Part shown: in pieces, positions 45,413 to 51,600 of the stretch
Numbering within the stretch: the stretch's first letter is position 1
How the letters are laid out: every line of letters begins with the position of its first letter
Assembly: GCA_020536535.1 (NCBI GenBank)
Contig: JAHLWZ010000733.1
Span: forward strand, 101,491 to 165,490
Reading direction: 5' to 3'
DNA length: 64,000 nt
Origin: Pelomyxa schiedti
Lineage: Eukaryota > Protista > Evosea
Notes under the pieces: generated by a model
Told to the model about the DNA's origin: nothing
Seen by the model: only the letters and a program-made list of their open reading frames with translations
Database searches by the model: none
Translations under genes and position numbers: made by a program

Positions 45413-46738
45413 CTATAATGACATCGTTTGAGACTGTATGTAAGCAATCTCGGTAGTATTATAAGGTGTTCCATCTTGCCGGAAAATGTCATGGAACCAA
45501 AGAGGGGGTTCACTTGTATAAGTTGTACACCAGCTGTCCCAAGGCATGATTGTTTGTGTTTTTCCGTAGACAAACCCCCAGTTATGAGCCCCCACACTCT
45601 GTGATTTGAGCCAACCAAGAATAGGATCAAATGTACTTCCCTGAGGCCTTGCCATGTATTCAGTGCACACCATTGGCCGGCCGTATTTGGTCAAACTAGC
45701 CACGCGGGATTGCATTCCAGACAAGGAGTCATAATTATGGAAGGAGAGGATGTCAGATTGGTCAATCATAGCCTGAGCCAGCTGGTCCGGATTGTCCCAG
45801 TCTCCCCACCACAGGCCGGCTGTCAGGGGTTGGGTTGGTGTTGCATTCCTGGCTGCAGAGAATGCCAGGTTCAGAATTCCAAGGGATGCATCGGCCCGGT
45901 CGGTTGGATTATAGGCCTGGTAGGCCGGCTTATTGGGGTTGTCTGGTTCATTGAACAGGTCCCAGCCCCATACACGGGTGTCATCAGCAAAGCGGGATAC
46001 TACAGCGTAGATGTAGTCCCCAATTACACTATTCCACTGGGTTCTATCTTCCATGACAAGAAGTCCTGGGGATTGCACCCAACCAGAGTTGTGAACCCAT
46101 GGGAGGGGATCACGTTGCCTACATGACATAGGGAGAATGGTTAGCAATTGAGCATACTTCTCAAATAGTGATAAAAAAAGAATTATTATTAGTATTCTCA
46201 TACGTGCTGGGTTGTGGCCAAGGATCCCAGCAGCCATCCAATAAAACTAGCAGAGTTTCAATTTTGTGACTCTCAGCTACGTCAAGGAAGGCATCCACAC
46301 GTGCAAGGAATCCCTCTGGATCCTTTGTTCCCCAAATTGTAAGAATGAGAAAAGCCTCTAAAAAAAATTACTTGTGAGTATGCCAGATCATGCAAGAAAA
46401 CCCTGACACTGTTAAACCCCAGGCTACTAGCCCACCCCAATTCCCTATCAATTGTATCCAAGTCAAAAGTATCCTCCTATAAAAGAAAAAGGGGCTTAAA
46501 AAAAAAAACCAAACGCCGGGACCCATAATTAAGATGGAACCTGCCACATCTCCAGTTGATTTATCGCGGTGGACGGTATGAAGTTGCAACCGACACGCCA
46601 TTCCTGCCCCTGGGCCCATTCCACTGCCCTTTCTGTGGTCCATCTCGTGCCCGGGCTGTTGCTGTTGTGACTGTGACTGCACAAACAACCCAGAGATCCC
46701 ATAATCACCAACACGGCAGCACCAACAAGTCCCTTCAT
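45413..46738 (-). CDS. Secreted clan GH-A glycoside hydrolase (GH5-like, bacterial type)
   Basis: Signal peptide; RWTTERAVEW...GCNFIPSTAINQLEMWQ; acid/base WDLFNEPDN; nucleophile CTEYMAR; WGFVYGKTQTIMPWDSW; WFHDIFR.DGTPY. Confidence 0.88.
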
Positions 46739-46848
46739 CTTACCCCTTCCTCGACGGCGGTCAGGCCTGCCAAACGGTATTTGATGAAAAATTTTTAGAA
46801 AAAAACAAAAACGGAAAGAAAAAGAAGTCTGGAGGAAGCTTTTTTTTA

Positions 46849-48416
46849 CTAAGAGGACTTGGGGAGGGTGTTGAGGAATAATTTAACTTCAGGAGCCAGG
46901 TCGGCAAACACACCGGGAGTTAGGTCTGTTTGCATTCTGAATTCAAATGGCTTTCTTCCAAGGAGCAAGTCTCTATCTGAGGAACAATGAATAGGGTAAA
47001 ATTGTAGGTACGAGGAAACCGTTCTCCCACGTGAACATGCCAGTTCCTGCAAACTCAGCCAGTGGGTTGATTTCAACAACCCAGATTTGAAGATTTTGGA
47101 ACCTATGTTGGTGGTGAATATTTCAAATTGTTAATAGGAAGATGGACCTATCAGTGCGGCCGGGATATTCCCCTTCCCTAGGAACGCATAACACAAAGTC
47201 AATTACGTAGCTTGGAATGCTGATCTTGGGTTGAATTCTATTCCTATAATCCTCAGAAATGAATCGAACGATTTCCTCCCTCCGTGCGAGAAGCTTTGGG
47301 AAGAAAGCAAAACTGTAGCACATAAGATTACTTCAGTAAGAGGAAGAGGGTGTTACTTGTTGTACTGCGTCAATGCTGTGAACTGCCCATTGTGGACAAA
47401 ACCGCGGAACTCAAGGTCGGGGTCGAATGTACGGAACTCCCGGACTACCACCGAGAAATTTTCGGTAATTCTGCCCGATGAGTATTCCTGTAGATCGCCT
47501 TGCGTAGAATATAAGACAGAATAGGTTATATTTCGATGAGAAAATCACCTTGTATTCGATCACTCATGACAAGGAGTTTAATTCCTTCGGCAGCCCGGGA
47601 AAGTTTCATGGCATAAGTGGTTGCCCTGTAAATGGCACACAGCTGCCTGTTCTCTTTCATATCTGAAATCGTTAGAAAGAGGTAGTTTGAATTTGAAACT
47701 ACGTGGATATGGAGGTAATCCTGCTTCGTCATGCTCAACCCACTCCATTTCGTGGTTAAAGTGATTGATGAAATCTGGTGATTCCATTGGGGCATCCTTT
47801 GGACTTCGAGAGGAAAGTCTATTTTTTCAGTTAGAAAAGGTGATGTCAATGGGTTTATCACTACCTAATGAATATGAAAGGTACACCAAGTTCCGCTTTT
47901 GCTCGATCGATAGACTCCGCAAGTTGCATGAGTACACTATTGTTTTCCCATGTTACTGATCTATCAGCTTGCCATCTCTTGTGCTCTTCAACGAGCGCTG
48001 CAGCAGCCTTGTGTGGTATTTAGTTATTTCTTGCCACATAAAGCGTTTGGAGGACTCACTTCTCTTGGTAGAGGGACAAAGGTGGACCTGAAAGTAAATG
48101 AAGCTATCTGATCATAATACTTTTCCATGTAGGTTTCTTTTAACAGTAAGTTCCTCTTCCACAACCAGACAAGTACATAAAATGGGGAAAACAGATAAAA
48201 CTCTAACCTTCCATCAACTGTACATACAGGTAAGAGCATTAACAAAGAGAAAGAAAGAAATCACACAGTTTGGTAGTTGGTTCCATCGCAAATAAGTTGC
48301 ACAGGACGCGGTGGTTCCTTCGTAGCCTGTTTCCACCCATAATGTAAGTTCGACAACGTTCAAAGCACCGGGCTTATGCACACCGTTTTTTTCAGTTTGA
48401 CACTACTGAAGTCCAT
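46849..48416 (-). CDS. CDC123/R2K-clade ATP-grasp protein with N-terminal WH2/beta-thymosin-like motif
   Basis: Spliced MDFSSVKLKKTATKEPPRP...; FIFIRLSSRSPKDA; EFRGFVHNGQFTALTQYN; YVIDFV; IWVVEINPLAEFAGTCLFTW. Confidence 0.8.
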
Positions 48417-48629
48417 CTTCTCAGGTTGGTACGTTTGGTTTTTTTGCTCTGTTAAGAAGAAAGTTCCTTCTTAAGAGTCATCAAGGAGCTATTTTCCGCG
48501 TTGTTGTTTTTTGAAAACATCCATTCACAGGAACATCACCCGCTCGAACTTGGTTTTTTCCGGGATCACACCGAAGAACTAAGAGCGACTGTTTAAATTC
48601 TCCGCCTGCCTGTTCATTTTCGAAACGAA

Positions 48630-51600
48630 ATGTCGGCGCCGCCACCCCCGCCACCGCCCCCAGCCAAAACGACGAGGCAGGGAAGTAATGCCACCGCCTC
48701 CCTTGCTCCTGTGACATCGGCAACTTGCGCTCCTTCGAGTATGCCGGGGAGTAAGATCATTGGCCGTGTTGCTCAAGTGATGGCGTCTCTGGATCTGGAA
48801 TCTAAGTTTAAGTTGCTCTCTGGCCAGACCGCTTGGTCTACGAGAGCAGGTAACTCACACCCATCATTTTTTCCCTCTATCTCTCTTCGTCTCTTTCCTT
48901 CCCTCTGGCTGAATGGCTTAGTGACATGAAATGGGCGGGGGTGTGTCAAAATAGTTAGGGAGTCCTTCCCACAATTGAAGTTGGTGGATGGTTCATGTGG
49001 TGCGCGCGGGAGTGGGTGCCCCGATTACCCAAGTTGCTTACTTCCATGCCCGGCAGCCATGGCTTGCACTTGGGACCCTGAATTGGTCTATAAACTATGC
49101 AAGGTTTGCAACTGTGATTTATTATTTATAAATAACAACTGAATCACAACACGTGTGAAAATTTGAAGACAACGGGGATGGGGGAATCCTCATTGAACTT
49201 TCTAGTTCAAAAATGAACTAAATTGATACAGGTTCTTGGACACGAAACAAAGCTGAAAGGCTCACATATTGTTTTGTCTCCAATGGTTAATATGCAACGG
49301 CACCCACTCACTGGAAGGCATTTTGAGTGTTTTTCAGAGGACCCATTTCTGACTCATGTAATGGGTACCGCGTATGTGAAAGGAGTTCAATCTGAGGGTG
49401 TTGGGTGTTGCTTGAAGCATCTCGTATGCAATGACTGTGAATTTCAGAGGACAACAATGAGTTCTGTAGTGATTGACAGAGCTTTGAATGAGGTCTATCT
49501 TCTACCATTTAGGAGAGTTATCACTGATTCAAAGTACCTTTTACCCCCCTTCCTACTCTTCTCACATATTATGCAGCCCATGGTCACTCATGACATCCTA
49601 TAATAAGCTTAATGGAGTCTACACAAGTGAAAGCCCGCTTCTTGAAGATATTCTTCGGAATCAATGGCAATATGATGGACTGGTTGTGAGTGATTGGTAT
49701 GTAGATTTCACTTGACTTGTGTACTTTCACTGAAAAGTCTTCGTAGGGGTGGTGTTTACAGTCCCTCAGCACTTGTTACTGATCTCGTAGACCTTGAGAT
49801 GCCTGGTCCAGGAAAGTGGATGTCTCCCACCGCCGTCCAATATGCCTTCAAATCAGGACAACTGACAGAATCACTTCTGAACAAAAAAGTTGTGCGCCTC
49901 TTGACTGCCATGGATAGGGTTGGCTTATTGGCACACCCAGAAGTCATCACTGAATCCACCCAAGATAGAGAATCAGATAGACTGCTTTTGCGTAAGACTG
50001 CTGCCGAATCAATTGTCCTCTTGAAATATGATAACTCCTGCGCATTACCACTACAAGCTGGCAATATCTCGAAGTAAGCATTAAGTCTTTTTTCCAAATA
50101 CTTACTCTTACTCCAAGTAGAGGAATTGCTGTCATTGGTGAACCCGCATTGTACGGGCTCGAATGGGCTGTTGCAGTAGGAAGTTGTCAGTTATTCCCAC
50201 ACTATGTCGTTTCCCCTGTTGATGGTAGGAAAATATCTAGCTTATCTATCAACTAACCTATTGACAGCCATTTTCGAACACTGCAAGATGGCCCACGTAC
50301 CCGCATTCTATGAACCAGGTTGCATGTTCCACAATACGGTCCCCTGCATGCCCTCCTCCTGGTTGAGGCCCCAGGAAGACAGCACAACACATGGACTGCA
50401 TATCACTTACTTTAAAGACATCGAGATGACACAAGTGGCCCATTCTTCTATTTCTAGGCAGACGTATTGGAAGTGGACAAGGAACCAATTTCCAACCATT
50501 CCCCTTGCTTGCAGAATTGAGGCCGTTCTTTCCTCACCTTTCACAGGAACACACCACTTATTCCTGGAAGGATCGGGTATTAGAAAATTGTTCCTCAATA
50601 ACAACCTCCTTCTCCACAGTTCGTTAAAGTAAGGCTCCCACAAGGAATAGTTCATAACTGGTCAAAAGGAAAGCACCTGTCGTTCTCGAATTTGGGCATA
50701 TGTACAATCTCAGAATCGAGGTTGTTTCTACTGAAAGTGAACCGCGTGGCCTTTGGTCACTACAACTTGGATGTCTTCCCCCCCTGTCTGATGATCCCCT
50801 TCAATCTGCTGTTTCTGCTGCTCAGCGAGCAGATGTTGCCATTATTTTTGCGGGACTAGGCTGGTATAAAAACGAAGTTCGCTTATTCATCTAAGTCTAC
50901 TCTTAGCAATTTTGAAGGCGAAGGTCTGGACAGAACTCGCTACGAACTTCCCGGGAAACAAGATGAACTTATCTCGAAAGTAGCTGCTGTTAATCCAAAC
51001 ACCTTTGTTGTAGTTGTTGGAGGTGGTCCCGTTGACATGACCAAGTGGTGGAATAAAGTTCCAGCGATCTTCCATGTGATGAAAACTTTTCCTAATTCTG
51101 CATTGCTGATAATAAACCTTAGGCATGCTATCTTGGACAAGAATATGGCAACGCTATATCCGATGTTCTATTTGGTACTGTTAATCCATGTGGAAAACTA
51201 CCCTTTTCCATACCAATGTCTATAAGGGATACCCCAGCTTTTACCTCCTTTCCTGGAGAAAATTCAGAGGTATCCACTCCCATCCATATTCTTAACTTAA
51301 CTTTTTTCAGATATTATACTGTGAGGGTGAATTTATTGGTTATAGGTGGTATGATAAAAGAAGAATACAACCACTGTGTGCGTTTGGGAGTGGCTTGTCC
51401 TACACCCAATTCAAACTACAGTTCTGCCCCTAATTTGTCATTCCATCAAAGAATAATCTCTCTCCTTTCAGGAACCTGTTATACCCTGAGACTGTTGCTC
51501 AGAACAGCGCTTCTATCCCAATTTCTCTGGAAGTTCTCAATGTGGGCAAGTATGGTGGAAACCATGTTGTGCAAGTATACACCAAAATTCCTTCCTCGCG

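Follow-up and report, generated by a model that had tools for sequence, protein, structure and literature searches.

An N-terminal WH2-type motif joined to a CDC123-like ATP-grasp domain in Pelomyxa schiedti and its protist relatives: a candidate actin-directed enzyme

Canonical Cdc123 is an adenosine triphosphate (ATP)-dependent assembly factor for eIF2, and in solved structures it binds domain III of eIF2-gamma together with ATP. ATP-grasp proteins of the CDC123 type (R2K) retain a complete catalytic site, yet we know of no demonstrated ligase product for the canonical protein, of no demonstrated reaction product for any other member, and of no N-terminal LKKT motif in canonical CDC123 from human or yeast. 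The R2K ATP-grasp proteins are marked by a basic residue in RAGNYA strand 2 (K104 in the human protein) and by a second Lys or Arg downstream in a loop (PMC4431377). According to that account, R2K relatives occur in toxin and peptide-ligase contexts, and amoeboid CDC123 paralogues are guessed, from their phyletic pattern alone, to modify the actin cytoskeleton (Burroughs et al. 2015, PMC4431377). Here we describe a gene of Pelomyxa schiedti, located at 46849-48416 on the minus strand of a 64,000-nucleotide stretch of contig JAHLWZ010000733.1 (positions 101,491 to 165,490 of assembly GCA_020536535.1; hereafter the window, in whose numbering coordinates are given), the product of which very probably unites a WH2-type motif and a CDC123-like ATP-grasp in one protein. 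The 356-residue protein carries the motif at its extreme N-terminus, followed by a linker of ~14 residues and then by the ATP-grasp domain. A motif of the actin-monomer-binding type, conserved at residue 1 of a whole clade, supplies a concrete candidate partner for amoeboid CDC123 paralogues, whose link to the cytoskeleton has so far been speculative.

From its reading frames and GT..AG borders, the region resolves into an intron-rich eukaryotic gene of 11 exons with introns of 40-71 nucleotides each. The public record for this gene, P0054 (356 amino acids, listed at NCBI as 'cell division cycle protein 123-like [Pelomyxa schiedti]'), contains all of the exon pieces in order, with gaps only at split codons, and the public gene model is the same as that of the initial annotation, microexon included. 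P0054 served as the reference protein for the downstream analyses; the initial searches were run exon by exon. The exons are listed below, where tiling refers to the match of each piece to P0054.

Exon 1, 48384..48416, minus strand: M1-T11, MDFSSVKLKKT, a short-form WH2/beta-thymosin-like motif with its LKKT core at 48395-48384; placed by tiling and by a position homologous to the family's conserved L-[KR]-K-[TV] column; RNA cover stops short of it.
Exon 2, 48267..48326, minus strand: A12-T31, ATKEPPRPVQLICDGTNYQT, with ATKEPPRPVQ as linker and then LICDGTNYQT, with which the folded N-domain starts; placed by tiling and by alignment to the relatives' 'LC..(D/E)Y..' block; intron 1 measures 57 nucleotides, with GT..AG borders.
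Exon 3, a 10-base microexon, 48208..48217, minus strand: L32-M33-E34 and the first base of E35; placed by frame, by the relatives' conserved 'LM(E/K)ET' and by its presence in P0054; flanking introns of 49 and 71 nucleotides, with GT..AG borders.
Exon 4, 48060..48136, minus strand: ETYMEKYYDQIASFTFRSTFVPLPRE, holding an alternative start ATG at 48128; placed by tiling; RNA confirms the intron 48059-48008.
Exon 5, 47865..48007, minus strand: part of the N-domain, its final two bases beginning R108; RNA joints 48006/48059 and 47818/47865, and tiling.
Exon 6, 47703..47818, minus strand: (R)LSSRSPKD onward, with R108 and K115, the R2K-defining basic pair, and D116; both borders confirmed by RNA.
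Exon 7, 47549..47662, minus strand: ...YRATTYAMK...SDRIQ, with the invariant R182; RNA and tiling.
Exon 8, 47357..47498, minus strand: VVREF...EFRGFV...TALTQYN, with E214 and R216 on the ExR strand of the kinase-like half; borders confirmed by RNA.
Exon 9, 47148..47312, minus strand: D270 (VIDFV), which is the acidic residue conserved in strand 4; RNA and tiling.
Exon 10, 47020..47102, minus strand: VVEINPLAEF, the ExN metal-binding motif (E297, N299); borders confirmed by RNA.
Exon 11, 46849..46976, minus strand: TAG stop at 46851-46849; an RNA contig reaching 46836 gives a 3' untranslated region of at least 13 nucleotides.

Read in order, the N-terminus in the window is MDFSSVKLKKT, ATKEPPRPVQLICDGTNYQT, LME and ETYMEKYY. 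Exon 2 cannot join the exon that encodes MEKYYDQ in frame without the microexon, which is therefore needed and which the initial annotation had not named. Further downstream, RLSSRSPKD corresponds to residues 108-116 (47866-47794, the R108 codon being interrupted by an intron), EFRGFV...TQYN lies at 47412-47359, and EINP is encoded from 47074 onward, all on the minus strand. The initial annotation had read MDFSSVKLKKT-ATKEPPRP from the first two exons and RLSSRSPKD, EFRGFV...LTQY and EINP from the remainder, and each of these peptides was recovered on the minus strand where it had been placed.

The N-terminal extension is shared by relatives from distant lineages. With exon 8 as a phmmer query, 47 proteins were found among 1.84 billion representatives, and the full-length matches have the same N-terminal extension as the Pelomyxa model (for example, MDFSKVQLKSV...VVLCEDSDQYTKLMEETYLEQY, or MSLLEALQQKRSKLKKT...TLICKGSDDYHRLMKETYMEEY in Bigelowiella). 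A word search with one relative as the query returned 138 proteins, P0054 among them. For two relatives the gene lacks introns: one is on a metagenome scaffold (L001), the other in assembly GCA_040384145.1 (L002); in both, the Met of the motif is the first one past an in-frame stop located 5-8 codons upstream, and it opens a single reading frame that includes the D123 domain. The fusion of the motif to D123 is thus independent of any splice prediction. The product of the first of these genes, P0083, is identical to the Pelomyxa protein over its first 12 residues (MDFSSVKLKKTA) despite an overall identity of 37-39%, which points to a strong constraint on the short form of the motif. The P0083 gene occupies L001:1994-2971, and its neighbors encode a homogentisate dioxygenase and an FKBP-cyclophilin fusion.

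Members were found in Amoebozoa (Pelomyxa, Physarum, Balamuthia, Arcella), Rhizaria (Bigelowiella, Chlorarachnion, Ammonia), Heterolobosea (Acrasis, Naegleria lovaniensis) and bdelloid rotifers (Adineta, Rotaria, Didymodactylos), as well as in Anaeramoeba (Metamonada), the colponemid Colp12, one copepod transcriptome and many metagenomes. In a quick maximum-likelihood tree, 134 of the 142 rows form one clade with an SH-aLRT (Shimodaira-Hasegawa-like approximate likelihood ratio test) support of 99, and the WH2-type motif is present in each of its major subclades. The eight CDC123-like rows outside this clade include P0146 from Pelomyxa and P0145 from N. gruberi; classical CDC123 sequences were not among the rows. 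Two outgroup rows, P0043 and P0044, were considered as classical CDC123 and rejected, as they are distant from human CDC123 (E about 1e-6 to 1e-7). In most members that lack the motif, the first residue is precisely the Met of the 'LM.ET' block, which is what a transcript or gene model truncated at the 5' end would give. Sequence comparison thus places the Pelomyxa gene in a well-supported clade that spans many protist lineages and has a common layout. The initial annotation had proposed looking for homologs combining WH2 and R2K in other amoebae; more than 100 relatives with the same layout were found in distant protists, and together they suggest a family of actin-directed enzymes that is testable and, so far, undescribed.

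Three sets of records at the margins of the family are also worth recording. The divergent CDC123-like protein P0021 (312 amino acids), located outside the main clade, begins with a WH2-like stretch, MANFAEELNSVKLRKV, and it may be that the motif predates the 134-row clade or that it arose twice. P0146 (500 amino acids), which falls outside the WH2 clade, joins a ZPR1 jelly-roll (PF22794) to D123, so the Pelomyxa genome appends several different accessory domains to a CDC123-like module. In the bdelloid records P0165, P0169 and P0082 (Adineta vaga, Rotaria), a ketoacyl-synthase (PF00109/PF02801) is joined to WH2-D123; as the WH2 Met is internal there (…MSLADQLKSVRLRST…), these look like merged models of neighboring genes. 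Horizontal transfer may account for the presence of this protist-type family in bdelloids.

The conservation of the motif itself was assessed on 78 distinct N-termini, each of which extends for 20 residues or more ahead of the 'LC..(D/E)Y..LM.ETY.E.Y' block. The aligned core reads L in 75 of them, K or R in 70 (50 K and 20 R), K in 54 and T or V in 61, with A at the last column in 10 more. Loss of LKKT in homologs had been named at the outset as grounds for abandoning the proposal, and these counts speak decisively against such a loss. In an alignment of 69 rows (A1), the core columns are 100% L, 93% K/R, 71% K/R and 83% T/V. Ahead of the core, column -7 is L, I or M in 99% of rows and columns -13 and -12 are hydrophobic in 86% and 53% (residues -11 and -10 when ungapped); positions -4 and -3 are basic, and past the core the residues are polar or acidic. 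A typical N-terminus, MSFLKEIEQKKtaLKKTe, consists of an amphipathic stretch and then the core; that of Acrasis kona is MSFLDDIKNRNSNLRKV and that of another relative MSFLDDIKKGTTLRKA. Pelomyxa, Physarum and several others form a short-form subgroup, MD[FL]S.VKL[KR].T, with seven residues before the Leu. The Pelomyxa motif keeps the LKKT core together with F(-5) and V(-2).

A 26-column profile from A1 was searched against 177,635 distinct PDB sequences. Eight matches were obtained at E <= 10, six of which are actin-binding peptides or domains: the WH2 of N-WASP (E=2e-4), thymosin beta-9, WIP, MIM, the G-actin-binding site of VASP and a thymosin beta-4 chimera. When single members were scanned against Pfam, WH2 (PF02205) was the sole family matched more than once, by 3 of the 69 (P0070 at 24.8 bits for a cut-off of 23.1, P0170 at 20.8 and P0033 at 16.5). 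The likeness to thymosin-beta and WH2 that had first been noticed in the sequence is therefore borne out by the family's N-terminal segment, which retrieves such peptides in profile searches, and the motif probably binds actin.

The body of the protein was identified by profile and fold comparisons as a CDC123/R2K ATP-grasp with conserved ATP- and metal-binding residues, in agreement with the class to which the initial annotation had assigned it. P0054 scores 64 bits on Pfam D123 (PF07065; E=1.7e-17), for which the cut-off is 24; exon 8 alone reaches E=1.8e-4, and exon 10 alone gives a weak match at profile positions 232-253. The exon-by-exon search of PDB yielded one irrelevant match only, and a protein atlas contained generic D123 clusters only. 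An 87-row family profile retrieved human CDC123 (E=5.9e-23) and fission-yeast Cdc123 (E=1.5e-14), and the single-sequence phmmer alignment to human CDC123 (E=4.9e-5) spans the EFR and INP motifs. The AlphaFold2 model of P0054 has a predicted local distance difference test (pLDDT) of 94.7 and a predicted template-modeling score (pTM) of 0.90. With this model as the query, the top ten Foldseek matches in PDB were all Cdc123 (E about 1e-14, 17% identity, template-modeling score up to 0.76 by target); RimK, D-Ala-D-Ala ligases and tubulin-tyrosine ligase (TTL; rank 33) were found lower down. Across the family, S110, S113, K115, D116, R182, R204, E214, R216, F218, Q229 and Y230 are invariant, and R108, D270, E297 and N299 are nearly so. 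The R2K basic pair is present as R108/K115, with Arg instead of Lys in the first position.

Transcript data were taken from contigs of four single-cell RNA-seq runs of one study, mapped onto 46700-48700; the libraries are 3'-biased. The contigs span 46836-48104 with zero differences to the genome, and seven RNA joints match introns 4-10 of the model exactly. Loose contig ends at 47961 (CCCATGTAC) and 47472 (CCCATGTACTCTGC) resemble template-switch oligo or adapter at internal positions rather than transcript starts. They suggest truncated cDNAs, which would explain the absent 5' cover. In the six-frame translation of the window, LKK[TV] occurs 6 times, compared with 2.1 +/- 1.5 in shuffled sequences, so that a bare LKKT is near chance level; it is the conservation at the same position in relatives that lifts it above chance. 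The codon-usage log-odds of exons 1-2 are compatible with coding and too weak to decide, and a Pfam scan of the N-terminal open reading frame pieces gave zero matches. In a first reading, we took the LKKT exons for a chance upstream open reading frame and ATG 48128 for the start of the gene, given the near-chance motif, the 10-base microexon, the Pfam result and the RNA ending at 48104. This reading was dropped on the grounds that relatives share the extension and that P0054 tiles the exons; by homology and by the public gene model, the LKKT exons are part of the gene, as originally claimed.

Taken as a whole, the best explanation is a WH2-tethered R2K enzyme that docks on the actin monomer and ligates onto actin or a partner, and we give it about an even chance. 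The protein would be cytosolic, and its N-terminal motif would dock the enzyme on an actin monomer in the manner of solved WH2-actin complexes: the motif helix would occupy the barbed-face cleft, and LKKT would extend along subdomain 1. At the expense of ATP, the tethered ATP-grasp module would next generate an acyl-phosphate and ligate an amino acid or a peptide to actin itself or to a protein that the monomer carries, much as tubulin-tyrosine ligase acts on the soluble tubulin dimer. For the last step considered by itself, covalent modification of actin or of an actin partner, the sequences leave us somewhat short of an even expectation. Should actin be modified, its known post-translational modifications would gain a new class, and a new mode of coupling an enzyme to the monomer pool would come to light.

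Several observations weigh against this explanation. The first concerns the enzyme: canonical Cdc123 has the same catalytic residues yet is an assembly factor, so their conservation is no proof of ligation. The others concern the motif. Apart from N-WASP, the PDB matches have E-values of 0.1 to 0.9, and single E-values are marginal for a motif of ~20 residues. The Pelomyxa N-terminus itself has no Pfam WH2 match; LKKT is preceded by just 7 residues, so that the WH2 helix is for the most part missing. In the AlphaFold2 model, residues 1-25 are coil with a pLDDT of 75-81 and the first helix begins at residue 26; it is conceivable that the N-terminal tail packs on its own domain instead of being free. 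Finally, 48105-48416, which holds exons 1-3, is outside the RNA contig cover, and RNA is neutral on these three 5' exons.

Of the competing explanations, the one that survives best, although we consider it unlikely, is that the protein is no ligase but an ATP-dependent assembly or holding factor in the style of Cdc123, where WH2 would capture the actin monomer and the body would bind the monomer or a partner non-covalently. This would mirror the way in which Cdc123 holds unassembled eIF2-gamma, and the closest solved relatives are indeed Cdc123 proteins in complex with eIF2-gamma domain III and ATP; the canonical protein has the same residue set and, to our knowledge, no identified product. 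However, the acyl-phosphate and metal residues are near-totally invariant in the family at 32-45% sequence identity, and R2K relatives are found in toxin and peptide-ligase contexts (PMC4431377), both of which count against this reading.

Somewhat less likely again, actin could be a cofactor or an address, with WH2 activating the enzyme or bringing it to places rich in G-actin, and another protein or a small molecule being modified. The WH2 evidence fits this equally well, and a linker of ~14 residues leaves the reachable target unconstrained. Bacterial toxins, moreover, include actin-activated enzymes. However, nothing in the locus or in the family indicates another substrate, the neighboring genes being unrelated glycosidases.

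It is improbable that the basic motif does not bind actin at all and instead targets the protein to the nucleus or a membrane, or serves some other partner, its resemblance to WH2 being one of composition only. Its shortness and its many lysines would fit, as would the failure of most members, that of Pelomyxa among them, to reach Pfam WH2 and the weak PDB E-values noted above (0.1 to 0.9 apart from N-WASP), but the hydrophobic periodicity, the invariant Leu and K/R-K-T/V make up a WH2 signature that is unlike a generic basic patch, and six of the eight PDB matches are WH2 or thymosin peptides bound to actin. Last, the idea that the first three Pelomyxa exons are a prediction artefact and that the protein begins at ATG 48128 (MEKYYDQ...) can be given very little credence: RNA contigs ending at 48104, an unusual 10-base microexon, a motif that by itself is at chance level and several database relatives that begin at the equivalent Met would favor it, but exon 1, exon 2 and the microexon each have a residue-by-residue counterpart in the relatives, the two intronless genes included, the first 12 residues are those of P0083, and in relatives whose sequence opens at the anchor Met, the 5' end of the transcript or gene model seems to have been lost.

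The docked ligase on the actin monomer could be extended from the Pelomyxa protein to its relatives, so that the entire clade would be an 'actin ligase' family writing an amino-acid or peptide tag on G-actin in many protists and in bdelloid rotifers. This is a tentative proposal that we regard as doubtful in its full breadth; if true, the tag would be the actin counterpart of tubulin tyrosination and glutamylation, and actin would be the first defined substrate of a CDC123-type enzyme.

The Pelomyxa gene is tightly packed between two others. Downstream, the next gene opens within 46529-46738 on the minus strand (ATG 46738) with a signal-peptide-like N-terminus, MKGLVGAAVLVIMGSLGCLC..., and runs on into a GH5-like glycosidase; only 111 nucleotides separate it from the stop codon of the CDC123-like gene, a very tight intergenic spacer. 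On the other side, a divergent gene at 48630-49600 on the plus strand (ATG 48630) begins with a proline run, MSAPPPPPPPPAK..., and has GH3 beta-glucosidase-like exons. As 213 nucleotides lie between the two divergent start codons, the promoter region is probably shared.

The initial annotation had known of no description of this fusion, and none was found in the literature searched: no paper combines WH2 and Cdc123, WH2 with ATP-grasp or D123 gave irrelevant papers only, and 'Cdc123-like' led to Burroughs et al. 2015 only. WH2 is mentioned neither in the main text of that paper nor in the examined part of its supplement (PMC4431377). The labels 'cell division cycle protein 123' and 'translation initiation regulator CDC123', under which members are annotated, mislabel the clade.

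Four known systems offer points of comparison. The first is canonical CDC123/D123 of human and S. pombe (PDB 8phd, 4zgn-4zgq), with which the Pelomyxa protein shares the two-domain ATP-grasp fold and corresponding residues in the basic pair, ExR, Asp and ExN. However, identity is about 17%, and the family sits in a clade of its own, apart from the other CDC123-like rows. The second comprises the fast-evolving paralogues of amoeboid protists, Legionella and giant viruses described by Burroughs, Zhang and Aravind in 2015; shared traits are the non-classical, often multi-copy CDC123-like proteins of amoeboid eukaryotes. That account offers no sequence link to actin. The third is formed by the WH2/beta-thymosin proteins (thymosin beta-4 and beta-9, N-WASP, WIP, MIM, VASP), which likewise have an amphipathic stretch, L-K/R-K-T/V and a polar acidic tail, whereas in the family the motif opens the protein at Met1, ahead of an enzyme to which it is fused; of the thymosin motif, Pelomyxa retains only the part that matches 'FDKSKLKKT'. 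The fourth is tubulin-tyrosine ligase and the TTL-like proteins (TTLL), which are ATP-grasp ligases and attach amino acids to a cytoskeletal protein, TTL acting on the unpolymerized subunit. They belong to another ATP-grasp family and recognize their substrate through the body of the enzyme and not through an appended short linear motif, so the analogy to the Pelomyxa protein is functional only.

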